A DNA stretch of 64,000 nucleotides from Thalia democratica (lineage: Eukaryota): assembly GCA_965202585.1 (NCBI GenBank), contig OZ241826.1, forward strand, positions 13,330,001 through 13,394,000, written 5' to 3'. Shown in pieces: positions 261 through 60,752 of the stretch (position 1 is its first letter; each line of letters opens with the position of its first letter). Position numbers and translations under genes: made by a program. The notes below the pieces were generated by a model that was not told the origin of the DNA, did not search any database, and worked only from the letters and a program-made list of their open reading frames with translations.

Positions 261-1139
261 TATTTATAAGTATTTAACATTAATTTTGTCAGTGCAGTTG
301 TCAATGTGAGTTTTTTAGATTAAAGTAAAAGCTTTAAAAATATTTTTTTGTTTTAATTTAGATCTTATTTGTTTGTTTTTTACTTACTTATTATTTAAAA
401 AGTTTTATTAATTTTATGGTGGTACAATTAAACATATTTTAACTAATTTAATGTACCAAATTAAGTGAATATGACTTTTTTTTGTTGCACTATATTGTTT
501 TCTAAAAGCCATGAGTTTATGTATATATACATATGTTCAATGACTATTGGCAATTATGTTCTATTTAATTACTATGAGAAAATCTTTTTTAAAGCTTTAA
601 GAATAAAAAAAAGATTGTATCAGCAGTTTGAGTTTTTTTTTATTGCTGCAAAATATAAAACAAAATTTTGCAACCTTTTAATCTTGGAATTTACCTCAAA
701 ATGGAAAACACCAAATAAATAACTTTATGATTTGATTTTGTGTAGGTGTTTTTATTTGCAAAATTTTTTGGAGAATGTTTTTCAATGTTTACCCAATGTG
801 TTTTGTGAATAGCTATCAAAAAAACTAACAATTAAATATTTAAAAAAAGATTCCCATCTTAAAAGTATATGATTAAAAGAAAACTACATAACAAATTGAT
901 TTCATTGATTTCGTTCTATTTTTAGTTGAAAAGTTAAATTTAAAACTCTCAATTTGATTAGCGCTTTAAAAATTTATTTTCGTGAATTCTTTAAACTGTA
1001 AGTGCTGCAATTAAAAAAGATGCAAAAAAAAAATATCCTAAACCACTACAAGTGCAATAAATTTGAGAAAATCTTGAGAAAACTTCGCAACCGAAAACAG
1101 GCTGATTAATGAAATGAATGTTTGCTTTGTGAGAACACT

Positions 1140-1890
1140 TGCTGCAAACATTTTGTACCGATTGCAGTAAGATTTAAGCGAATGTGATTGGGTAAAATTG
1201 CTAAAAATACACCACAAGTTTTGTGATTATATTATTTTGATTTTCTTGCTTCAGTACAAATAAAAATTTTGAATGTATAGTTGATAAAAGGTATAATTAC
1301 TGATTCAAGTTTCAATATTAAACTGTAAACATTGGTTGCAGAAACTTTTGTATCAGAGACTGTAATTTGATATTTTGTTAAAAATTATCACCAATTTTTA
1401 AGATTTGTTTTGATTACTTATATATATTTTTAAACATTTAAAACCAGTTCAAATGATTAAGAATACTTTTAATATAATTATAATTATATTAGTATGTGAG
1501 AAAAATTCTGCAAAAACTTTGAACTTATTGCAGAAAATTTTGTATAAGCAAATGGGATAAGATAAGAAAATATACCAAAAGTTTTAGTGGTTGTTTCTTT
1601 TAAAATAAATTTTTATTTTTAGTATTAAAGCTAATATTAATACCACATATATATTTTAATATTTTTGCAAATATATATTTTTTGATTGCAGAACTAATTT
1701 TTGTATATGTGAATGTTGACTTGATGAATTACTTAAAATACAATTTTCTTATGAGTGGTTTTTCGGTTTTAGTTATAACAGAAATCTAAAATAAAATAAG
1801 TTTGATATAGTTATTTTTATTAGTAAAATAACTAGGAAAGCTCATGCAAGCAATTTTGCAATGACTGCAGAATGTTTTGTATAAGGAAAC
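1140..1890. repeat. Degenerate ~160-195-bp tandem repeat
   Basis: Recurrent TGCAGAA...TTTTGTAT core at ~1141, 1337, 1528, 1686, 1866. Confidence 0.5.
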
Positions 1891-4881
1891 AGTTATATAT
1901 AATCACATAAAAAAAATTAAAAGTTATGCAAAAAAGTTTTAGGTTCAAATGATTTAAATAAGATTCTTAGAAAAATTATGTTCTGAAGTTCACTTCCTTT
2001 TTTTCTATAGTATTAGTTATAACAACAAATTATTTATATATACATTATTAGTTTTAAAAGTAAAAATCATCTTAAGTTTGTGGTTCATTAGTTTTCTCCT
2101 TACATAAAAAATTTTCCTTTGCTACATATTTTTCATAAATATTTACAACAAATTGCTACATGATTTCTAAATTAAGCATAATTTAATAGCTTAATTGGTC
2201 TAAAATATAATTTTAAATGATCTCTTACACAGATTTGATATAGTGTTACATTATTATAATATTCTAATGTATTGAATTAGCAATTTAATCTATATGAATT
2301 ACAAAGTGCCTTCTATAATTATACCATTAATTTTTTTGGTCTACAATATATTAGTAAAAGTACGTTTTCAGAACAAAATTAAATGAAAAGTTCATGGTGC
2401 TTATCTTCTTTTATAATTAGTTTGTTACACAATAATATAAAATTCGTTTAATTAAGTTAATGTTTTAAGTTTAAGTTTATAATAATTGCATTCTAAACTT
2501 TAGATATCAAGTACTGTAGTTGAATTTAATTACAGGAAAAAAACATTACAAAATACATTGATTGATTTTAGTGTTTTGATCTAACAAAACTTGAATTTTA
2601 ATTTTTTAATTGTAGCTATCAATCAAATTATCATTGCAATAAATTAAAAAAAACAATTTATTTACTAAGTGTTATCTCAATATGTATCCGTTATAAATGT
2701 TTATTAATGTATTTGTTTTTTCTCAAAATAATGTGTTGACAATTTTTAGAGCCATTCTTAACAATAAAGTAAATATATCAGCTGTCTCTAAATTTTAAGA
2801 TGATTTATTTTATAAGATTGAAATAATTTTAAATTGTGAAATATTTTACTTTTTTCAGTCATTTTCTACTTTTTTTTGTGTTTGCTAGTGGTGGACACAA
2901 TTTTTTACATAATAAATTTGTAATTTAATGAAAATTGTTATTAATCATCTTAATTGACATAAGATAAATTAGATGATTAATTTTATTTAAGCTTGTAATT
3001 TTTTCTATTTATTTCTGTGATAAAAAAGCAATTGATTTAAAAGTAAATTATATATGATTTTATCATTTCAACTACTGTTAATACAGTATTGTTGTAAATT
3101 ATAATAAAAAAATATTTTTTATCTTAACTTTCCTAATCAAAACACTATGTATACATAAAAGCTTTGAATTTCAAAATCTAATACTTTTAACCTCAGAATT
3201 TAACTTTAAAATCTTATTGTATTTAAGTCAGCTTTTTTAAACGAATAAATTTTAAATTTGGTAATTAAATACCTAAAGTTTTTCTGTTGTGTACAAATGA
3301 AAATACTTTTCGATAAATTTTATACTAATTTTTTTTTGAGATATTAATTTAGTATAGAAATAGATGTAGAACATTAAACAATTTATTTATCAACAACATA
3401 AATAAAAAAAATATTTAAACTCCAATAACATCCTCAATTGACACATTTTTCCGTTTTTTAACACATTTATATTTCAGTTAGTTAATTTCTTTGATCACGA
3501 CACATGTTTAATTGACATGTTGTTTTCTAACGTTTTTAAATTAAATAAAAATGGTGATTCATTAAATTTAATTATTATTTTGCAAAAACATTTTTTTTTG
3601 TAAACAACATAAAAACTATGTTTTTAGAATAAATAAAAACGATGATTCATTTGGTTCTAAGTATAATTTATTTTTGTAACAAATTAATATTATTCAAACA
3701 TAAAAACCGGGTTCTAACTAACAATAAAGGTCACTTGATTTCATACAAAATTAAATTAGTTTTTAAAAATTTTAAAAGTTTGCTTACAAACAAGTTGATT
3801 ATCCATAACTAATTGTAAATATTTTTCACTTGGTTTAACTTTTGTACTTTTATTAAACTTTGGTTCAATTTTAGGTAATTTATAAATGTTGACAATTTAA
3901 TTGTTTTTCATTTTAGCATACTTTTTGTAATAAAGCAGTTATTGCTTAACTATTTTTCTTAATTTTTATTTTGAGTTTTACGTTTCTTTAATGTTGAAAT
4001 AACCTCTTAGTTGGTTTAACTTACTTTTAATAAAATGATCATGAGAATTAAACTTTTCAATTTATGAAGCTAAAAAGTTCTGTAAACTTATCTGTTTTAT
4101 TTTCAGTAACTAATACTTATTAAACGTTTGACAACTTAATTTCAACCATAAATTAATGTTTCAAAGTGCATTAAAGATTTGATGTTTATATATAGATTTA
4201 TATGAACATGTATGAGGTATTACAAGTACAAAAATTCAGGCTGTTTTGAACTTATAAAATCAACGGAATTAGACTAAACCTAGTTTGATGTAAATCAGGC
4301 TTGCTTTTTAATCTTAAAGAGTGGCAACCCTTCCAGACATCCTTTTATTTGTAGTTTAATATTTCCAGTTACATTAATGTTCATTTTTATTTTTAAACTA
4401 GCTTTGATTTAACTGTAAAAACAAAAAAACAAAAGAAACTTTAAAAAACAATTTATTAAAAAGTTCTATTTGTATTTACTTACAAACTCGTTTTTAACTT
4501 AGACCTGGCCACTGAAGTTATACACCTTGTTTTTTATTAAGTTCTTGAACCGTACATTATAATTATTATAAAGATTGTTTTTAGTAATATTGATTCTCTA
4601 CTAACAATTGTGCACTAACGTTTCCTAAGTTTTTAAATCCGATTTGTTTGCGAATAGTTTTAGAATAATAATAGTTGTAATGAAAAATTATGAAGGTATC
4701 AGTCTAAATGGCTAATATTATATAAACTGTTTTACACTTTTATTACAAAAATTTAATTGTTTATTGAATGACAATACATTTATATGAAGAAAGTTGTAAT
4801 GAAAAATTATAAAGGTATTAATATATTTGTACTTCGACTGTTTAAATACTTTCAAAACAATTTTTTTTTATTAACCAACAG

Positions 4882-5157
4882 AAACTGAGCATCCGAAAGT
4901 GGTTCAGCAAATAGACGAGCAGAACCAGCTCAAGAGGGAACAGGAACAGAAGAACCACGTTGCGAACAAGAACCATATTGATAAGAACCATTTTGAAAAG
5001 TACCACGTAGACAAGAGCTATGACAAAAACCATTTGGACAAGAACCATTTGGACAAGAACCACGTTGATAAGAACCATGTACAGCAGGAACCGATGAAAC
5101 ACAGTAAAAAGCACCACAAGAACAAAATACACATCAAGGAACAACAACTGATAGGAG
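4882..5157 (+). CDS. ATXN7: ATXN7-like exon with (D/E)KNH(V/L/I) pentapeptide repeats
   Basis: caacag acceptor, open frame of track ORF 4899-5171, phase-1 donor GTAAAA matching the next exon. Confidence 0.8.
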
Positions 5158-8100
5158 GTAAAACGACTTAGGATAATTTCGTTAATGAAAAGTAAAATAA
5201 ATCATGTATTTACAAAAAGTTCTTATATATGAGGTAATAGAAAATTTGTTTAACTCACTTTATTTTCGTTCAATTTAATACAACTCTGGCCTACGCCTTA
5301 ATATAGCTAACATAATTACTTATATTTGAGGATTTTAACAAGTAAATTTATAATGGCAATAAGCATTTTAACATAAAAATAAAAAACAAGTTGTACATTG
5401 CAGGAGGTATTTTATAAATATAATTATATATATTTATGACTTACTTTAACAAAATTTTTTCAAGACCCTACTTACATTAGAAAATTAAACTATCATATAT
5501 AGCTTAGCAGATTTTGTTACAAAACCATCAATAAACTTAATTAATTTTTCTAATAGGTAAAGAGAAACATCACAAAAAGGACAAGACGAAAAAGAAAGAA
5601 AAGAAGCGGCATTTAAACCAATCAGAAGCCTCGTACAAAAGTTCAGGGGACATCCCTTCAAAACCCCCCTTCAAGAGGGAAGTAACCCCGGAGAGGAACC
5701 CGGTTGCCAGGGAAACGCCTCCCGTCACCCCCATCAAGATCAAGCTGAAGCCAAACAACGCGGCGGGGGCGGCAGTAGTTAAAAAAATCCCCTTCGGCGG
5801 AAAACCCTCACCGTCACCGCGGAATCACTCTAGCGTAACGACTCCAACGAAACCCAATCAGGTTGTTTCCCCAAAAGTGGTCGCCAAGCAACGAGATGTG
5901 ACAAAGCACCGCCACAGTGACGTCATAAAGTCGCCGCTGACGTCATCAACCGAAGTTAGTGGCGGGAAAAAGAACAAGTCTCACAGCGGGGGAATTTTGG
6001 GAAAGGTGGGAAGGGAGTTTCAGAGCAAGAAGAAGTTGATTTCCAGTCCACCCCACAGAAACCATGACAACAAGGAAAGCAATCACCATGGTAACAATAA
6101 GGATTACAAGGTCAACCCCCAGCACCAGAGTCATCAGGGGATCAATCTGCTGAACAGCAGAAAGAGACCTGCCGCTTTGGAAAGGTGACATTTGATTCTA
6201 GCATTAAAAAATCTTTTATTGTCTTATTGACAGCAATACAGGAATCAGTTTTGATTTTACTTCAAAAATAAATGTTTAAACCAGTGGTTTTTAACCTTTT
6301 TTCATGTTTACCCCTTTTTTGAAGGTAATCACTAAGTTTACCCGTAATTTACAAGATAGTGTTTACATTTTGAGGCAAAAAATAGATTTTTTGAATCTTG
6401 AGAGTATATAATATAAAAATTGTAAACTTAAAGAATTCATTTAATTTTAAATAATTACATTTAAAAACTAACTTATAAACTAAAAAAGATAATTAATAAA
6501 GATTAATTTATACAACTTGTAATAAAAATAAACCCTAAAACAAGGGAATTTAGAACCACTAGCTTAAACTTTATCATCAAATTTGATAGTTAGTTTTTTT
6601 TCAAATTTTTTGTTCAATTGTTATTAATGTTTTTGGAGTTTATTTTATTTCTTTAAATGTTTTATCAACTTTCAGTTCAAGTGACGTCACTCAACCCAAG
6701 AAACCGACTTCGCTCAGCAGAAACGGGTTTTACCCTGAACCAAAAAAACTCCCCGAAACCAAGAAACACTTAATTAGCGACATCAAGAAGAAAAACTCCC
6801 CAACGACCCAAAAAGTTCCCCACCAGTTTCCCCATGGTAACAAGATACGCCGGGCCCATAGCAACCAGAACAAAGCTCCCACGGAAGGTTTAATAATGCC
6901 CACCAAGGTTGAGCCCTACAGAAATGCGCCCCAAAAAGCCCCTAATTCGGTACCGACTAAAACAAAAAGTTTGCACCAGAAGCTGGGTATTTCCCAAAAC
7001 AGTAATTCGTCCAGGATGTCAAATCACCATGGTAACAAGCACCACATGTTGGGGCAGGGTTCCGGGATGCAGAAGGTTGTCAAGAAGCAGTCCCCTTCAC
7101 TGCAGTTGCCTAGCAACAACAACAAGTTGCCTAGCAACAACATTAAATTGCCTAGCAACAATAATAAATTGCCTAGCAACAATAATAAATTGCCTAGCAA
7201 CAATATTAAGCTGTCTAGCAACAATTTGGTTGCTAAGCACAACAGTCACGTGGTTAACCATCAAGAGATCAAGAAAGAAAAGTTGAGTTTGAATAATTCA
7301 TCACCTCACACAGGTTTGTTTATAAGTTACCTTTTATATACAATATATTATATAAGTATATATACAAATATGTACTGTTTTAATCCCTTTTCTTATATTA
7401 ATAACTTTTTTATAAGTTAAATTAACGAACAATTTAAATGTTCTTTTATTTATAATTAAATTTATACATAAAGTACTACTTAAATTTTTGAAATGTTTAT
7501 TGATTTATTTAGTATTGTTAATTAAATTTATCAAACTTAACAGCCGCCCAATCGCCACGCCTCAACTTTATGTCGTCACAATCGTCGCAGCAAACCGATT
7601 GCTCCTCCCCGACTTCCAGTATTCTATCAGGGACTTCCCCTAAAAACATGTCACCTCTCGTGACGTCACAGAGGAGCTTGAATGACGTCACGACGAGAAA
7701 CATGAACCCGAACCTAATGAAGCAGAAAGTCATCCCGTTGAAAGGTTGGGGAGAATTACTTTATACTTGTTTTTAGCTTTCATACCTATTTATATACTCA
7801 TTAGCTGTTTATAATTTATTCTTTCACGAATTTATTGTCTTGAAATAAATTCTTGAAAATATTCATTACTAAGTTTCGGTCAAAGACCTCGTCAGTGCTT
7901 AAATAAATCTTATTAAAATAGAATAATTCTATAGAAATAGGATATTTCTCCTCCAGTAGTTGAGATCTCTCTATTTGTTTTCTTAAAGCCAAAACATATA
8001 ATACTAATTTATTATGTTATAAAAATATTATGGTTAAAGTTCTTTTTATAACTTTTTTTTCTTGAGAAACTTAAATGTACAGCTTAAGCCTTTTGAGTAT

Positions 8101-11100
8101 GTAATGTGTTAAGACTTAAGGTACTCTTGATATTTTAATTTCAAATGTCTATAAGTCTCATTAGATGGCCTCAAGAATCAATTTCTAATAGTAATCTAGG
8201 TACTGTTTTTGCAAGAAATTAGTTGCTAATAAGCATTTCTAATATAAAAACTAAGTACAGTATGTTGAAATATGCAATCCTCGGACTAGCTTTTTTGTTC
8301 TTTTTGCCCGAGAGCTTATCCTATGAATGTTTGTTTAAGTTTTTCACTGTAAATTTTAGTTAAAGTCTTTTGTTGTGCAAAAGCTATACTATAATAATGT
8401 TTGACTTTAAAAATTAAATATTACTGTATATTGTTTTTCCTTGGTCCTACTCTAAAATTAATTTTAATATAATTTGTTTTAATTCTCTCTTTTTTGTACT
8501 TTTTGTATCCAGGAAATAATAAACCCATAAGAAAAACCAAATGGATTGCATTATCAAGTAAGAATGTTTAATTGATTTGTACTTAAAATTTGTGTTAGTA
8601 ATAATATTGTGGTTATATTATTACTATTATAAAATTAGTAACTACTAACTAATTTGAACAAGTAGTTGTTGTACGTAATCTTTTGAGTATTGATGATCTG
8701 TGGCAAGGACACTTCCAAAGTGAAACTTTGATATATACACCTAGTTCAATGCAAAGTTTTTTATAATTACGTTCATATTGTTCATATTTACATTCCAAAA
8801 ACTTATTATTACAGTTATTTTTTGCTAAAGTACACATTCTGAACACAGCAGCTACTCTATAGAAAGTTTGTAACTATGAATAACTAGTCTACATAAAATC
8901 GAAACTTGACAGAAAGTTTTTATTTTGGTTCAAAATTGTGTACTGAATAAGAAGTGTGTACTAAAATGCGTACTACTCAAAATAAGTGAACTAAATACGT
9001 ATTTATCAAATATGCTTAATCTAAATTCTAAATGATAAATAATGGGAGAAATAAATGAAAGTGCATACTTAAAACGCGTACTTGAGAAGTAGGTAAAACT
9101 TAGACTAAAATTATATATATATACATATTTCTTAATGTAGAGCTAGAATACGACACGGACTAACATCACGGAGTATTTATATAAATTTTAGTATATTTAT
9201 TTTAATGTATTTGTAAATATGTAATGTATTCTATCAACTAATATATTTTTTCATTATATCAGAAAGAGAATACGATGCGGACAAACATTGCGGAGTTCAA
9301 CTTACGGGAGAACCCAGATGTTTGAGAAGTCTGACTTGTAAAACTCATACAATTACTTTGAAGAGAGCTGTTAGAGGTAGTTTGTCAAAAATAGTTATTA
9401 TAATGAAATATATTATTTGTGCAAACTTGCAAGAAACACACTATTACTCTGAAGAGATCAGTTAGAGGTTTTTTTATTTTTAAATATATTAAACATTTTA
9501 CTACTTATTTTTACTTGCAAAACACATACTATCACTCTGAAGAGAAGTGTTAGAGGTTAATTAAAAAGTATAATAAGTTTCAACTGATTATATTTGTTTA
9601 CGTTAACTTTCAAGACTCACAATGTTGCTATAAAAATAATTATAAAAGAGTATTTGTTTCTAGTTTATTTATGCATATTAAATTTAATGTTAACTACAAG
9701 TAGCAAGACACAAAAGTACTTTGAATAGATCTGTTAATGGTTATATATAATTATAGATTCAACAATATTGTTTAAGTCTAGTTAAACATTTGTTTACCAA
9801 ACTAATTTATATTTATTTATCAACAGATCGATCCAAATCATTCGATGAACTGTTGGCGGAATCTCGCGCAAGAACGCATCAAATGAAGAAGATCAGAGAT
9901 GAGCACAAGATCAAGATTAGTCAGGAAAAGTACAAGGGTGGGAAAGGGAGTGGGAGTCCTTATATGGGTTTGTAATTTGATAGTAGGTATATTATAACAA
10001 TGTTAACAAACATTTTGAATAAATTTCTTAAAAATAGAGATCCATATCTCGTAAAAATTAAAATACTCTCGTAATTATCAAAATAGTTAGTGTATAAACA
10101 CTTAAGATTAGTCAGGAAAAGTACAAGGGTGGGAAAGGGAGTGGGAGTCCTTATATGGGTTTGTAAATTGATAGTAGGTATATTATAACAATGTTAACAA
10201 ACATTTTAAATAAATTTCTTAAAATTTGAGATCCATATCTCGTAAAAATTAAAATATTCTCGTAATTATCAAAATAGTTAGTGTATAAACACTTAAGATT
10301 AGTCAGGAAAAGTACAAGGGTGGGAAAGGAAGTGGAAGTCCTTATATGGGTATGTTGATTTTTATTACATTTCAAACTTTCAAACAATTTGAGGTCTCTA
10401 GCTCAGAAGAGAGTAGTATTAAGGGGTCTGATAGTCTTTTCGTGTGTTAGTAAATTGATGCTTGGCATTTAATGAAAATATAAAAATACTTAAGATAAGT
10501 CAGGAGAAATTAAATGGTTTAAAAAGTAGTGGGAGTTCTTGTATGGGTATGTTTACTTAAGTAAATGTATTTTGCCTTTTTAAGAAGTATTCTAACTGTT
10601 TTAGGAGCTTTTCTGAACATTAGAGATCTCTAGCTTAGAAAGTATAAAAGTAGTTAATTTTTTTATTACAAGATTAGTGTAAAAGGATCAGGTCTTTATA
10701 TGGCTTAGTAAACTTTTACTAGGTATTTTCGTATACTGTAGACTTACAAAATATTAAAAAAATAGAGTTGGTAGTTTTTGTTTGAGCATGTTGATTGTTT
10801 ATTCTAGATTTGTGTGTAAAGTGAAAAGGATAACTGGATCTAGAAATCCTTGTTTTTGTATGTTGGTAGGTATATAAACTAAAACGTTTTATCAAGCTTG
10901 AAGATCACTGTATAAGTTTGCTGAAAGTCATTACAAAGTTTTTAAAGTTGATAAGTTTTTTGAAGCTATATATGGCAATAGACAATTACTAATATCTTTT
11001 GAACAGAAAATCATAAAAAGTTACTTGAAAAAATTATATAAGAAGATAGACCAGTACATGTACATTTTAATATAAATTTTATAAAATGAGCATATAAATT

Positions 11101-30424: not shown

Positions 30425-31300
30425 TTAGCAGGATTTCTTTGCCAACATGGCAACTGCTTTTCTGTTTCCTACAAACACACCATTCAGTATTCTGACACAA
30501 CTCCTAGCTGCTTCTGATACTTCAAAAGAAATCAACCCTTCTAAACCGTCAGCAGAAGATTTCAAGTTAGTATTTATAACATTTCCAAAACCTTGGAAGC
30601 TTTGTCTGACTTTGGTTTTTGACAATTTATGAGGCAAACGTACATAAACAGTGTTTGTTGTTTTTCTTTCATTAATCTCACACTTTGGTTTCAGAGCAAG
30701 TGTTTTCTTGTGTCTCTGGTTTTCAACTTGCCTAAAACTAGTGAATTTTGCAGAATTTTTTATAGGAATACTAGTTGTATTAAAAAATTCTGCCCTTAAG
30801 CTCTTAAAGTCTTCAGGGTCCAAACATCTTTCGAGAAACTTTTCATCCAAAGTTTTAAAAGATTCAGCATCTAAAAGTTTATCAATCACATCTTTAGAGC
30901 TTTTAATTTTATTGCGTGCTTTTTCATCAGATAAGGATAAATAATTAAAACTATCATTATTTCTCCTGACGTTAGCATGTTTTATAGTGTTTCTAATATC
31001 ATTTTGCTAAGGAATCCGAGCTTCCAAACAGCTAGAAACTAGTGAAGTTTCTTTCATGTTTTCAATAACACATAACCAATCTACTATTCTTTCTTCAGTA
31101 GAAAAAAACGGATGACTCAACAAAGAACCTTGAGAGTTAGAGCTCCAAGATTTATCCGAGCATCCTGAAGAATATAAAGAACTCATTGAAGTGGAACGAG
31201 AGTCCGAGTCGGTAGTGGTTGTTGAAATTTCTTCTTCGCTGTTTTTCGTTTTCTTCAAAACTTTGAAGAATTTTAAGATCTTTTGTTTTTCTGATGACAT
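30425..31300 (-). pseudogene. Intronless Ser-rich/DWL/RRM-like family member interrupted by a single in-frame TAG (31009-31007)
   Basis: ORFs 31007-31300 and 30425-30889 are in one frame; total 876 nt, equal to paralogue 59877-60752; the TAG aligns with Trp (TGG) in paralogues. Confidence 0.8.
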
Positions 31301-35873: not shown

Positions 35874-36770
35874 ATGTCATCAGAAAAAGTAAATATTTTA
35901 GAATTCATCAAAATTTTGAAGAAAACGAAAAACAACAAAGAAGAAAATTCAACAACCACTACCGACTCGGACTCTTGTTCCACTTCAATGAGTTCGTTGT
36001 ATTCTTCAGGATGCTCGGATGATTCTTGGAGCTCCAACTCTCAGAGTTCTTTGCCGAGTCATCTGTTTTTATTTACCTAAGAAAGAACTAGAATAGAAGA
36101 TTGGTAGCGTATTATTGAAGGTAAGAAAAAAACTCTATACCAGATTCTAGCTGTTCTTAATCCCGAATTCCTTGGCAAAATGATATAAGATACACTAAAA
36201 TCTGTGCTAACGTCAGGAGAAATAAAGATAGTTTTAATTATTCATTTTTATCTAACGACAAAGCGCGTAATAAATTTGAAAGGTTTAGCTGCAAAGACGC
36301 GATTGATAAATTTTTAGATGCTGAATCTTTTAAAACTTATGATGAAAAGTTTCTTGAAAAATGTTTGGACCTCGAAGACTTTGAAAGCTTAGGAGCTAAA
36401 ATTTTTGATACAATCAATAATCTTATAAATTTTTTTTCAAAATCTACTATTCTTAAGCAAGTTGAAAATCAGAGACACAAGTAAACACTTGCAGTTAAAT
36501 CAATGTGTGAGATTAACAAAAGAAAAACAACAAACACTGTATATGTACGTTTACCTCTTAAATTGTCAAAAGCTCAAGTCAAAGAAAGCTTCCAAGGTTT
36601 TTGGAAATGTAATAAATACAAACTTAAAATCTTCTGCTGACGGTTTAGAATGGTTGATTTCTTATGAAGATTCAGAAACAGCTAGGAGTTGTGTCAGAAT
36701 ACTGAATGGTGCGCCTGTAGGAAACAGGAAAGCTGTTGTCATTTTGGCAAAGAAATCCTGCTTAAGGTGA
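35874..36770 (+). pseudogene. Decayed paralogue of the Ser-rich/DWL/RRM-like family
   Basis: N-terminal (35874-36080) and RRM (36462-36770) pieces match the 31 kb and 60 kb copies but are separated by several stops and frameshifts. Confidence 0.85.
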
Positions 36771-41899: not shown

Positions 41900-41953
41900 G
41901 ACAATCCTACGACCGGTTTCGTCCTTTTTAGGACTCATCAGGCAGGAATAGTC
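41900..41953 (-). ncRNA. Type I hammerhead ribozyme
   Basis: GACUAUUCCUGC-CUGAUGA-GUCC UAAAAA GGAC-GAAA-CCG-GUC^GUAGGAUUGUC: complete core, 4-bp stem II, minimal palindromic stem III (ACCGGU), stem I CCUGC/GUAGG with extension. Confidence 0.9.
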
Positions 41954-46420: not shown

Positions 46421-47047
46421 ATGAGTTCTAAAATATACACCACTGAGGGAAAAAAAAAGAACTCAACTAGTAAAGTTGAAGCTTTGGGAACCTCGCAAGC
46501 AAAAGCTCACGAGAAAAGAGGTGTAAAAAGAGGTGCTTCTACATCATCCGAAACTTTCGAAAACAAAGCAAACGCTGAAACTGATCGTAGCCAGAATAGT
46601 CGGCAAGATAGACAAGCTTACTCAATTGAACAATTTGAGTTTCAGCTTCCAAAGCATATTGTAGATTACTACAACAAGCTGTCACCGGAGGAAAAAGCAA
46701 GCGTGTCAAGAATTGAAGATCCCGAACGTCGGGATATTTGTTGTGTCATCATGGCAATGGAAAAAGAACAACAATATCAACCCAATTCATGGGCAAATAT
46801 ACAATTGCGCAAAGAAGTGGAAGTTTTAGTAGAAGATATAAACTGTGAAAAGGATGATTTTGTTCCTAGAATACTGCAGGTCTTTGAAAAATTTGGCAAG
46901 GTAGAATATCACAACTTGTTTATGGACAATAATAGTTTGAAAGGACGAATTGGTTTAGATTCGCTTGAAGCTTGTGACAAGGCTGTCGCGGAAATTAATG
47001 GCAAAAGAATCGAAAATTTAGTGTTTCATGTAAAACAAATTTTCTAG
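46421..47047 (+). CDS. Intronless 208-aa protein with a C-terminal RRM-like domain
   Basis: Long ORF in AT-rich DNA; VLVEDIN...ILQVFEKFGKV...GRIGLDSLEACDKAVAEINGKRI fits the RRM beta-alpha pattern (F..FG.V, A..A...NG); ttttcag acceptor 15 nt before the ATG. Confidence 0.75.
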   Translation: MSSKIYTTEGKKKNSTSKVEALGTSQAKAHEKRGVKRGASTSSETFENKANAETDRSQNSRQDRQAYSIEQFEFQLPKHIVDYYNKLSPEEKASVSRIEDPERRDICCVIMAMEKEQQYQPNSWANIQLRKEVEVLVEDINCEKDDFVPRILQVFEKFGKVEYHNLFMDNNSLKGRIGLDSLEACDKAVAEINGKRIENLVFHVKQIF

Positions 47048-50770: not shown

Positions 50771-51556
50771 ACAAATAATTACTTAAACAAAAAGTACAAT
50801 AAAATTTAGTTGATTTTTAACACATACATATTATTGAACAATAACTGTTTTCGTTATATTATGAGACAACTTTGTACAAGATTTTGGTAAAATGTAAGAT
50901 ATTTGGAAAATAAACTATTTTATTTTTTCTATTGCCTTAGCGCAATACATTAGCTCTTTTAAATAAAAGTTAATGCATTCATCGCTGGCTTCGAGCTAGA
51001 AAAATGAATACTATTTTAAAACAAAAGTAAATAAAAATATTTTTTATTACTTAACATTATATTAATCAAAAATATTTACTTAAGCGAATTTTATGTTTTG
51101 AAAAATAGTTAAGATGTATACTCATAGAAAAGTAAAAGCCGTTAATACAGGTATTCTAAATTCATGACGTGTTAGGTTTTAATACAAACAAATACTGTAA
51201 TTTTTTAACATATCTCAAGCTGTTTGTTTAACGGTGTAATAGCTCTCTTTTCATGAAATATTTGGTATTTAAAAACCACTGGTATGTGGTTACAATAAAA
51301 TAATTATGATTTGAATTTCTAGTGCGAACTTATAAATCATGGTGGTGCGTACAGTCCAATTTTGAAATTTCAACGTAAAACAACTATGTTGTTGCATAAA
51401 TAAACAATCGGTGTGTTTCAAATACTTTTCGAAATTAAAAAAATATACACAAAATTGATTTTAAATAATACATTGAAAAAAAAAAGTTAAAAAAGTATAG
51501 GATTTATGAAAAAATTGTGTGAAAAAAAGAAGTTACTGATCAGAAATTGAAAGGAC

Positions 51557-51830
51557 AAAAAAGTGGGCGCTGGACAGCCTGCCTGTTTGATTTCGGCTGC
51601 CTGTCCTGCGTACCAAGTTCACGTCCCAGTGGAATTACAATCTCCTTCTGAAAAAACGACCTAACAAGGTTAGCAATCTAATGCACATCGCGCTAACAAG
51701 AGTGCTAGCAGCTGATCGCATTCTTATATACTTGCGTGGTCGTCCCCATAAAGGAGCGGCCGACGGGACTCGGGCTCGGGACGCAGGGCCGGCAGTCGCA
51801 TAAGCAAACCGCTGGGCCATACAGGCGCCC
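51557..51830 (-). ncRNA. Candidate Pol III ncRNA gene, copy 1 (tRNA/vault-like head)
   Basis: TTTATATA at -29; A-box TGGCCCAGCGG (51819-51809); B-box-like AGCCCGAGTCCC (51776-51765) at exact tRNA spacing; T6 at 51656-51 and 51562-57; ends GGGCGC/GCGCCC complementary. Confidence 0.55.
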
Positions 51831-51977
51831 GCCTGTCTACTCTAATTACTGTATATAAACCATCTATATTCAAAATTGATTTTAAATATTACATTGAAAA
51901 AAAAAAGTTAAAAAAGTATAGGATTTATGAAAAAATTGTGTGAAAAAAAGAAGTTACTGATCAGAAATTGAAAGGAC

Positions 51978-52251
51978 AAAAAAGTGGGCGCTGGACAGCC
52001 TGCCTGTTTGATTTCGGCTGCCTGTCCTGCGTACCAAGTTCACGTCCCAGTGGAATTACAATCTCCTTCTGAAAAAACGACCTAACAAGGTTTGCAATCT
52101 AATGCACATCGCGCTAACAAGAGTGCTAGCAGCTGATCGCATTCTTATATACTTGCGTGGTCGTCCCCATAAAGGAGCGGCCACCGGGACTCGGGCTCGG
52201 GACGCAGGGCCGGCAGTCGCATAAGCAAACCGCTGGGCCATACAGGCGCCC
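51978..52251 (-). ncRNA. Candidate Pol III ncRNA gene, copy 2
   Basis: As copy 1. Confidence 0.55.
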
Positions 52252-52398
52252 GCCTGTCTACTCTAATTACTGTATATAAACCATCTATATTCAAAATTGA
52301 TTTTAAATATTACATTGAAAAAAAAAAGTTAAAAAAGTATAGGATTTATGAAAAAATTGTGTGAAAAAAAGAAGTTACTGATCAGAAATTGAAAGGAC

Positions 52399-52672
52399 AA
52401 AAAAGTGGGCGCTGGACAGCCTGCCTGTTTGATTTCGGCTGCCTGTCCTGCGTACCAAGTTCACGTCCCAGTGGAATTACAATCTCCTTCTGAAAAAACG
52501 ACCTAACAAGGTTTGCAATCTAATGCACATCGCGCTAACAAGAGTGCTAGCAGCTGATCGCATTCTTATATACTTGCGTGGTCGTCCCCATAAAGGAGCG
52601 GCCACCGGGACTCGGGCTCGGGACGCAGGGCCGGCAGTCGCATAAGCAAACCGCTGGGCCATACAGGCGCCC
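52399..52672 (-). ncRNA. Candidate Pol III ncRNA gene, copy 3
   Basis: As copy 1; upstream box TTTATATG. Confidence 0.55.
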
Positions 52673-52819
52673 GCCTGTCTACTCTAATTACTGCATATAA
52701 ACCATCTATATTCAAAATTGATTTTTAATATTACATTGAAAAAAAAAAGTTAAAAAAGTGTAGGATTTATGAAAAAGTTGTGTGAAAAAAAGAAGTTACT
52801 GATCAGAAATTGAAAGGAC

Positions 52820-53093
52820 AAAAAAGTGGGCGCTGGACAGCCTGCCTGTTTGATTTCGGCTGCCTGTCCTGCGTACCAAGTTCACGTCCCAGTGGAATTA
52901 CAATCTCCTTCTGAAAAAACGACCTAACAAGGTTTACAATCTAATGCACATCGCGCTAACAAGGGTGCTGGCAGCTAATCACATTCTTATATACTTGCGT
53001 GGTCGTCCCCATGAAAGAGCTACCACCGAGACTTGAGCTCGGGACGAAGGGCCGGCAGTCGCATAGGCAAACCGCTGGGCCATACAGGCGCCC
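52820..53093 (-). ncRNA. Candidate Pol III ncRNA gene, copy 4
   Basis: Perfect T-arm CCGAG-CUCAAGU-CUCGG. Confidence 0.55.
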
Positions 53094-53239
53094 GCCTGTC
53101 TACTCTAATTACTGCATATAAACCATCTATATTCAAATTGATTTTAAATATTTTATTGAAAAAAAAAAGTTAAAAAAGTGTAGGATTTATGAAAAAATTG
53201 TGTGAAAAAAAGAAGTTACTGATCAGAAATTGAAAGGAC

Positions 53240-53513
53240 AAAAAAGTGGGCGCTGGACAGCCTGCCTGTTTGATTTCGGCTGCCTGTCCTGCGTACCAAG
53301 TTCACGTCCCAGTGGAATTACAATCTCCTTCTGAAGAAACGACCTAACGGGGTTTACAATCTAATGCACATCGCGCTGACAAGGGTGCTGGCAGCTAATC
53401 ACATTCTTATATACTTGCGTGGTCGTCCCCATGAAAGGGCGACCACCGGGACTCGAGCTCGGGACGAAGGGCCGGCAGTCGCATAAGCAAGCCGCTGGGC
53501 CATACAGGCGCCC
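53240..53513 (-). ncRNA. Candidate Pol III ncRNA gene, copy 5
   Basis: B-box AGCTCGAGTCCC; 5' GGGCG pairs with CGCCC 77 nt downstream followed by UUU; internal T6 broken (TTTCTT). Confidence 0.55.
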
Positions 53514-53799
53514 GCCTGTCTACTCTAATTACTGTATATAAACCATCTATATTCAAAATAAATTTTATATATTTTATTGAAAAAAAGTTAAAAAAGTATA
53601 GGATTTATGAAAAAATTGTATGAAATACACCATATATCACCGTGTGTATGAGATAACAAGTGTATGAGATACACCGTATTATAATAATTTTTAGTCTCAT
53701 AATATTTATTCAAAAAAAAAATCTCAAGATTAAAAAAATTTAAAACATACTTTCTTTTAATGAACTTTGTTAATGATGCTCAAGAGTTAAAAAATATAT

Positions 53800-59876: not shown

Positions 59877-60752
59877 ATGTCTTTGGAAAAAGAAAAAATT
59901 TCACAATACCTAAAAATTTTGAACAAGATGAAAAACAGTAAGAAAGATTCATCGAAAATTTCTAGGAGCTCATTTTGTTCTTCCGAATCGCAAGGTTCAG
60001 GCTTTTCAAGATCACAGGATTCAGGTGACTCTTGGAACGGTTCCAAATCTCAGAGTTCTACATCGTGTTCACATTTTTTTGTTTCCAAAGAAAAACAAAA
60101 AAAAAAGGATTGGTTGCGAGTCATGGGCAACATGAAAGAAAAGTTACAAGTTTCAAATGGTTTTAATGATCAAGCGTGGGAAGATTACATTAGAGACACC
60201 AAAATCTCTGTTGATGATGAAATAGAAGATAAAAACTTACAAGTTTCTGGTGTTCAAAATGTTCAAGCGCGTAAACCCAACCCAAGTAATGAGGTTGAAA
60301 TATCGAGTTGCAAAGAATGTTTTGATAGCTTAAAATCTGAAGTTTTGGAAGCTTTAGACGCAGACTTTATTGAAAGATACTTTTGTCCTGAAAACTGCGA
60401 AAGCTTGAGAACTGAAGCTACTGATAGAACAAATAAGTTCACTAATCTTAAGCAAGTTGAAAATGAGAGGCATGAGAAAACACTTAAATCAGAGTGTGAG
60501 ACTATTGAAGAAAAAGTAACAAACACTGTGTTTGTGCGTATACGTAATAAAATGTCAAAAGCCCTAGCCATGGAAAGCTTCCATGGTTTCGGAAATGTGA
60601 TTGATATCAATTTGAAATCTTCTGCTGACGGCTGTTTGGAGGGGCTGGTTTCATTTGAGTATGTTGAAAAGGCCAAGTTCTGTGTCAGATTGCTAAATGG
60701 TTTGCCCGTGGGAATCAGACCTGTTGTCATGTTGGCCAAGAAACCCAACTAG
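59877..60752 (+). CDS. Intact intronless 291-aa Ser-rich/DWL/RRM-like protein
   Basis: NTVFVRI...ESFHGFGNVIDINL...EGLVSFEYVEKAKFCVRLLNGLPVG is RRM-like; paralogous to the 31 kb and 36 kb copies including the 3' flank; ttttcag acceptor 15 nt before the ATG. Confidence 0.82.
   Translation: MSLEKEKISQYLKILNKMKNSKKDSSKISRSSFCSSESQGSGFSRSQDSGDSWNGSKSQSSTSCSHFFVSKEKQKKKDWLRVMGNMKEKLQVSNGFNDQAWEDYIRDTKISVDDEIEDKNLQVSGVQNVQARKPNPSNEVEISSCKECFDSLKSEVLEALDADFIERYFCPENCESLRTEATDRTNKFTNLKQVENERHEKTLKSECETIEEKVTNTVFVRIRNKMSKALAMESFHGFGNVIDINLKSSADGCLEGLVSFEYVEKAKFCVRLLNGLPVGIRPVVMLAKKPN

Follow-up and report, generated by a model that had tools for sequence, protein, structure and literature searches.

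A palindromic, tandemly repeated family of candidate RNA polymerase III genes in Thalia democratica with strand-specific T-to-C clusters

Introduction

Rodent 4.5SH genes occur in hundreds of copies within tandem repeats and combine a type 2 promoter, with A and B boxes, with a required TATA-like box at -31/-24; their RNA of about 94 nt is encoded in a 4-5-kb repeat, derives from 7SL/B1 and acts against the exonisation of antisense B1 (PMC10137851). Here we describe a tandem array of candidate RNA polymerase III (Pol III) genes on the minus strand of a 64,000-nt stretch of the Thalia democratica genome (contig OZ241826.1, forward-strand positions 13,330,001 to 13,394,000), which is referred to as the window. 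The combination that marks a 4.5SH-type family, hundreds of tandem copies with an A box, a B box and a TATA-like box at -30, was found in full in the family to which this array belongs. As with 4.5SH, the family is lineage-specific and has kinship with modules of the short interspersed element (SINE) type. It differs from 4.5SH in its 421-bp repeat, its 281-bp palindromic unit and its tRNA-type head, and it is known here from DNA.

With vault RNA genes (RF00006) the array units share internal A and B boxes, a TATA box at about -30 and the clustering of genes, but they fail the covariance model, are two to three times longer, do not conserve the panhandle of the head and occur in hundreds of copies. 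With 5S rDNA the family has in common a conserved Pol III gene, a variable non-transcribed spacer, multiple arrays and orphons, whereas its promoter type and its palindromic unit are different. Xenopus satellite 1/OAX and Sm-alpha of Schistosoma are Pol III-transcribed or SINE-derived satellites, and the limpet satellite PcH-Sat reportedly derives from Nin-SINE. Like such satellites, the family consists of tandem monomers of a few hundred bp with a tRNA-type Pol III promoter; unlike them, it has a gene that changes far more slowly than its spacer, and its monomer is an inverted dimer. In its organisation, the family may be regarded as comparable to the rodent 4.5SH genes or to 5S rDNA.

An initial annotation of the window had proposed an array of Pol III-type genes with a vault-like 5' domain or, alternatively, a SINE master locus. 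The array with its hybrid promoter (TATA plus A/B boxes) and without any Rfam match was recovered, and neither the vault-like nor the SINE reading was. The tempting claim of an invertebrate vault-like RNA is therefore replaced by a defined palindromic Pol III family in arrays on most chromosomes. This family is previously undescribed and without database match: a conserved 24-nt word had 0 matches in one scan of JGI metagenome contigs, and four exact sequence motifs of the unit, searched for in the literature, were found in no paper. We propose, with a probability of roughly 0.55, that the array is a single locus within a multicopy, lineage-specific family of Pol III transcription units, that is, of sequence-constrained small-RNA genes that carry a strand-specific footprint and would yield a main RNA of about 175-180 nt.

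Array structure, promoter elements and sequence constraint

Tandem Repeats Finder delimited the array with a period of 421 bp, 5.2 copies and 97% matches, and a repeat search resolved five in-register head-to-tail copies of 93-100% identity at spacings of 421/421/421/420 bp, so that the five-copy layout reported initially is borne out by both (coordinates in Table 1). Read on the minus strand, each 421-bp unit consists of a 281-bp GC-rich block, beginning with GACAGGCGGGCG and ending in CCCAC plus T6, and an AT-rich spacer of about 140 bp; the window as a whole has 25% GC. The annotated TATA box, A box and tRNA-spaced B box are present in every copy. All five copies carry the terminal T6 and, 30 nt 5' of a GGGCGCC run, GTTTATAT(A/G). 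Their A box reads TGGCCCAGCGG and is followed, at the distance that separates the two boxes in class I tRNAs, by a B-box-like GAGC(T/C)C(G/A)AGTC. The B boxes of the window copies contain C-for-T variants. An internal T6 at unit positions 182-187 is found in copies 2-5 and is changed to TTTCTT in copy 1; the two T6 runs had been placed at +175 and +270, which is correct when counted from GGGCGCC.

The 9-mer GTTTATATA lies at -31 of the 7SL genes of this genome, at -32 of its vault RNA genes and at -29 to -30 of the GGGCGCC run in the array unit. Because the distance matches that of the 7SL and vault genes, transcription likely starts at unit position ~8. For comparison across the family, copies were taken from 60 regions of this one assembly. 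Of 107 copies, 87 have an intact A box, 87 the internal T6, 91 the terminal T6 and 53 the canonical B box GAGTTCGAGTCC. Substitution-only diversity in 91 units aligned with their flanks rises from the gene (pi 0.067) over the upstream segment from -40 to -1 (0.10) to the spacers (0.14-0.20). Between arrays, the ratio of spacer to gene divergence ranged from 1.2 to 7.2 in 28 array pairs and was mostly 2-4; for example, the arrays of chr2 and chr9 differ by 1.9% in the gene and by 13.7% in the spacer. Uniform divergence along the monomer, as expected for a functionless satellite, was not seen in these 28 pairs.

On the reading that we propose, TFIIIC would bind the A and B boxes, and TFIIIB with TBP would occupy GTTTATATA at -30. 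Transcription would begin at the GGGCGCC run and end for the most part at the internal T6, giving a Pol III product of about 175-180 nt composed of a tRNA-type promoter head and a hairpin of about 90 nt. Read-through to the terminal T6 (positions 276-281) would yield an RNA of about 270 nt folded as a long imperfect hairpin. Products of about these sizes had also been expected in the initial annotation. A third one of about 80 nt is conceivable for those family members that have a T4 near +80, which occurs in about one quarter of the copies and in 0/5 window copies. Since the sequence is constrained and the pairing, as described below, is not, the product is taken to be a stable small RNA that would act via its sequence rather than its fold.

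A strand-specific pattern of T-to-C changes

The more unusual result is a pattern of mutations that affects one strand and one type of base change, is clustered, and is bounded by the predicted start and terminator. Changes were scored on the sense strand against the family consensus. T>C was found in at least one copy at 53/73 T sites of the gene and A>G at 10/59 A sites (Fisher p=1e-10); C>T and G>A were balanced in the gene, and the spacers were without asymmetry. When only changes present in at least two copies are counted, T>C affects 43/54 T sites and A>G 1/31 A sites within positions 8-187, and T>C drops to 3/19 T sites in positions 188-281 (Fisher p=2.9e-5 versus 8-187), with a few T>C at positions 201-226 and 276. 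Once T>C is masked, the two parts of the unit are equally diverse (0.047 for 8-187 versus 0.045 for 188-275). As a separate observation, sense-strand A>G is about 10-fold rarer per A site in 8-187 (0.0014) than in the flanks (0.010-0.017), which mirrors the T>C excess.

The old dispersed copies of the family carry T at 43/47 of the T>C sites, so T is the ancestral state, and the partner bases in the opposite arm of the unit are A, in agreement with an ancestral T. Single copies can be strongly affected. T>C is present at 16/54 T sites of positions 8-187 in copy L029 (2/90 outside, no A>G), at 19/54 in copy L031 (0/88 outside, one A>G) and at 11/54 in window copy 1 (0/84 outside, no A>G); the clustering in these three copies has p values of 1e-5 to 1e-9. 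Besides its 11 derived T>C changes, window copy 1 has three others, and window copy 4 differs from the consensus by six T>C and nothing else. Singleton variants are symmetric (9 T>C versus 8 A>G), and the T>C changes therefore appear to arise in bursts rather than from a steady bias. Variants at positions 35, 87 and 131 as well as the C states of the window recur in short-read-based contigs of another run and are thus not assembly errors.

Hot spots of the T>C changes include unit positions 35, 64, 83, 87, 88, 131, 137, 139 and 171. On the strand that bears the A, the 3' neighbour was G at 10/11 hot sites and U at 1/10 (p=3e-4), and A or U was favoured on the 5' side. A 3' G and a 5' A or U are the neighbours that ADAR enzymes prefer, and the genome contains two genes with an A_deamin domain. 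We infer that the T>C clusters are a footprint that Pol III transcription left in the germline, with transcripts that run from about position 8 to the internal T6 and only rarely beyond it; the clusters would then constitute a heritable mark of the proposed transcript. As to the chemistry, we tentatively suggest, as a possibility clearly less probable than the small-RNA genes themselves, heritable adenosine deamination of the template DNA strand by an ADAR-type enzyme within Pol III RNA:DNA hybrids, either in R-loops or in cDNA hybrids followed by gene conversion. In vitro, dA in DNA/RNA hybrids is deaminated by ADARs, which keep their usual context preferences on this substrate (PMC5389660). 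A>G on the RNA-paired DNA strand fits the strand, the extent and the 3'-G bias observed in the array unit, but the reaction is known from biochemistry and engineered editors (PMC5389660). Transcription-associated mutagenesis of tRNA genes has a C>T/G>A spectrum (10.1101/229906), unlike the T>C pattern of this family. If the deamination reading were true, it would mean natural germline editing of DNA by an RNA-editing enzyme and the first natural genomic evidence of a reaction known only in vitro. To our knowledge, heritable footprints of ADAR type have not been described at a natural Pol III gene. The mutation pattern alone would then map the transcript from the start site to the first T6, and transcript ends would become inferable from DNA.

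The palindromic unit, its predicted fold and the satellite alternative

A search with a family profile (nhmmer) gave an antisense-strand match in every copy. The consensus aligned with its own reverse complement at a score of 62, compared with -6.6 +/- 8.8 (maximum 22) for shuffled sequences, and with 63.5% identity from end to end. By this alignment, the 281-bp block is an imperfect palindrome whose 3' arm is a diverged antisense copy of head and body; a B-box-like motif is nearly intact in this arm, and the A box and the upstream TATA are gone. The block may have originated from a tail-to-tail inverted duplication of a head-plus-body module of about 135 nt that kept a working promoter in the sense arm only. 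The pairing of the 5' and 3' ends, which had been pointed out initially and is indeed present, is a consequence of the palindrome, as is the strong rod-like predicted fold. The closure of the first 78 nt on themselves, also proposed there, is not conserved in the family.

The predicted fold has z = -4 for the window copies. A hairpin precursor of small RNAs, driven by Pol III, would explain such a fold: the head would be removed and either the hairpin of about 90 nt or the full rod of about 130 bp diced, as in the tRNA-miRNA units of murine gammaherpesvirus 68 and other Pol III-dependent miRNAs. The fold of a consensus-like copy (-129.7 kcal/mol, z = -8), the 90-nt hairpin in which the predicted fold of the 8-187 RNA ends, and the best Rfam match of this copy, a weak sub-threshold one to mascRNA with its tRNA-like minihelix (16.7 bits, E 0.94), are in line with this idea. 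Substitutions, however, ignore the pairing and the T>C changes break U-A pairs, and we consider a hairpin precursor improbable.

Several observations weigh against the proposed small-RNA genes. RNAalifold and the counting of pairs in 89-107 copies and in 11 array consensuses gave no support by covariation. Among 107 sense copies, the changed pairs comprised 16 compensatory, 57 half-compatible and 154 broken ones in the old copies and 8, 207 and 484, respectively, in the others; both sets were indistinguishable from structures slid by 1-3 columns. The 11 array consensuses showed 16 breaks, four half-compatible changes and no compensatory one. The single clean pair swap, C34-G39 to G34-C39, belongs to the old dispersed subfamily. 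Moreover, the window copies have degraded B boxes, the 3' arm shows no less conservation than the remainder of the unit despite the conserved internal T runs, and hundreds of copies of a palindromic unit are satellite-like. Two RNA libraries labelled 'marine metagenome' (an oligo-dT transcriptome and a metatranscriptome) contain one contig each, which spans the full 421-bp unit, spacer included, and wraps round; such contigs could also stem from DNA carry-over or read-through. They carry the consensus T states. In a run of another organism, 450 contigs matched, with a summed depth of 26,000-47,000 over most of the gene and of 1,000-11,000 in the spacer. This drop could reflect diverged spacers as well as expression.

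A serious rival is accordingly a satellite that merely bears a Pol III promoter: an inverted dimer of a tRNA-type, SINE-like module that was amplified in tandem and spread at the DNA level, has no host function and is transcribed incidentally. Hundreds of tandem copies, inverted arrays joined at the unit centre, truncated copies at array edges, the palindromic unit with its internal terminators, the lack of structural covariation and a k-mer depth of thousands-fold with many variants in the other organism's run are all what such a satellite would show. On the other hand, the gene and about 35 nt of promoter evolve 2-7x more slowly than the spacer, near-identical genes adjoin diverged spacers on different chromosomes, intact boxes are confined to the promoter-bearing arm, and bona fide Pol III genes have the same element at -30. 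We therefore regard the plain satellite as possible but rather unlikely, and prefer the small-RNA genes. Even a plain satellite would be a clear case of an inverted SINE-like dimer that became a tandem repeat.

Family size and mode of spread

A BLAST search with one gene against the 802-Mb assembly returned 318 first-look candidates, and all of the matches that were scored (40/40) were full length with at least 94% identity. Two conserved words, allowing up to three mismatches, occurred 105 and 135 times in the assembly and their controls 0 times. We estimate the family at about 200-320 copies, mostly in tandem arrays with a period of 419-430 bp on at least nine chromosomes (C1, C2 and C4-C10) and on small contigs of the assembly; a count of dispersed copies had been suggested with the first annotation, and its outcome is this mostly tandem membership. 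Copies at array edges are truncated and some arrays are inverted and meet at the unit centre. At one such site (L038:5590-5650, C9:43540090-43540150) a near-perfect inverted repeat links two opposed arrays. The junction falls at unit position ~151-156, where the palindrome of the unit has its centre, and looks like a product of fold-back or template switching; it suggests how the inverted dimer unit arose.

A tRNA-type internal promoter followed by a body would also fit a SINE master locus whose RNA is retroposed, and many dispersed, decayed copies with tails like those of long interspersed elements (LINEs) had been named at the outset as the mark of an ordinary SINE. Yet every isolated copy examined has spacer and/or promoter beyond the RNA ends (from -49 to +416 and from -109 to +421, for example), no LINE-like or A-rich tail was seen, and no retroposon-ended copy was found among the isolated copies examined. 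The old dispersed subfamily, at 70-76% identity, has kept the segment from about -35 to the terminal T run (+281). In addition, the family counts only some 200-320 copies, and heads do not outnumber complete units (195 versus 318 first-look BLAST candidates). As the isolated copies keep spacer on both sides, the family spread as DNA and not as retroposed SINEs; it is best described as a DNA-level tandem family with orphons, and a SINE master locus is highly improbable. Six dispersed copies at C6:16.65-17.04 Mb (L017-L022), separated by 15-230 kb, are all without the promoter head (unit positions ~8-80) but have retained the spacer and the other parts of the unit. A larger duplicated segment has probably carried them along.

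Comparison with vault RNA, 7SL and tRNA

The hybrid promoter and the A and B boxes recall vault RNA genes, and the unit length is near that of 7SL, so that a vault-like RNA or another divergent housekeeping Pol III RNA (7SL, 7SK, MRP or P) had to be considered. For the window array (51400-53700) and for a consensus-like copy with an intact B box, Rfam returned nothing beyond chance-level matches (ZNRD1-AS1_3, ARRPOF and mascRNA), at the gathering threshold or at E<=10. The consensus-like copy had no match to Vault, tRNA, signal recognition particle (SRP) RNA, 7SK or MRP at E<=10. A confident hit to a known family, which would have contradicted the initial annotation, was thus not found, and its vault assignment did not hold, as RF00006 (gathering cut-off 34 bits) matched neither the array nor the consensus-like copy at E<=10.

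The same assembly contains canonical vault RNA genes of about 100 nt on C6 and C783, with top RF00006 scores of 55-59 bits, and canonical metazoan 7SL genes (RF00017, about 250 bits) on C10, C4 and C2. The array head aligned with the genome's own vault RNA at a local score of 14, compared with 13.5 +/- 2.0 for shuffled sequences, 223/500 of which reached 14. Shuffled sequence thus resembles vault RNA as closely as the head does, and the likeness proposed initially comes down to the Pol III promoter boxes that both have. A vault-type 5'/3' panhandle, which closes RNAs of about 86-140 nt, was not found either: its closing stretch (positions 76-90) varies more than any other part of the unit. Vault RNA was rejected on the missing RF00006 match, the real vault genes elsewhere and a head that scores no better than shuffles. 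SRP/7SL RNA, suggested by the length and a shared 10-mer GGCGCCTGTA, was rejected because RF00017 had no match on the array and canonical 7SL lies elsewhere. Together with the hundreds of copies, these results make a housekeeping RNA of this kind the least probable reading, with hardly any chance of being correct.

ARAGORN predicted no tRNA in the window or in any family copy examined, which agrees with the earlier remark that the acceptor and anticodon stems do not pair. The head has no recognisable cloverleaf and no Rfam tRNA match at E<=10; its likeness to tRNA lies in the A and B boxes and their spacing only.

At least seven vault RNA genes (49-59 bits with RF00006) were located at C6:22593858-22675300 and C783:13848-13947 (loci L057-L060, positions 1501-1600). 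In these genes, GTTTATATA lies at -32, a TGACG motif is found further 5', and the terminator is a T8 run. A major vault protein (MVP) gene lies at C7:28.936-28.939 Mb. Among other marker searches, let-7 had no match above the cut-off in the 57 of about 167,000 candidates that were scored, and neither an arthropod cuticle domain nor GH6 was found. At C6:12.39-13.01 Mb, more than 35 further Vault-model matches of 117-124 nt and 34-46 bits form dense clusters with a spacing of about 0.85-3 kb; they constitute a putative second Pol III-type family.

Coordinates and other features of the window

Table 1. Positions of the array, its five copies and the predicted parts of copy 4, in window coordinates
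Feature	Position	Strand	TATA	Predicted start	A box	B box	Internal T run	Terminal T6	Remarks
Tandem array	51450..53625	-							5.2 units of 421 bp
Copy 1	53240..53520	-	53535-53543	~53513	53492-53502	53449-53460	53334-53339 (TTTCTT, degraded)	53240-53245	
Copy 2	52820..53100	-	53115-53123 (GTTTATATG)	~53093	53072-53082	53029-53040, degenerate (GAGCTCAAGTCT)	52914-52919 (T6)	52820-52825	
Copy 3	52399..52679	-	52694-52702	~52672	52651-52661	52608-52619 (GAGCCCGAGTCC)	52493-52498 (T6)	52399-52404	
Copy 4	51978..52258	-	52273-52281	~52251	52230-52240	52187-52198	52072-52077 (T6)	51978-51983	
Copy 5	51557..51837	-	51852-51860	~51830	51809-51819	51766-51777	51651-51656 (T6)	51557-51562	
Predicted main transcript, copy 4	52072..52251	-							Unit positions 8-187; promoter head plus ~90-nt central hairpin; putative extent
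3' arm, copy 4	51978..52071	-							Unit positions 188-281; decayed antisense copy of the head, 3' of the internal T6

Rfam detected no ribozyme in the array. The only gathering-level Rfam match in the window is a type I hammerhead ribozyme at 41905-41947 on the minus strand (34.9 bits, cut-off 34). Four intronless open reading frames at 30425-30889 (-), 36462-36770 (+), 46421-47047 (+) and 59877-60752 (+), for which one Atlas look-up gave no usable match, form a local paralogous family and have in common an RNA-recognition-motif-like C-terminus with the pattern NLKSSADG...LNG...VGNR.

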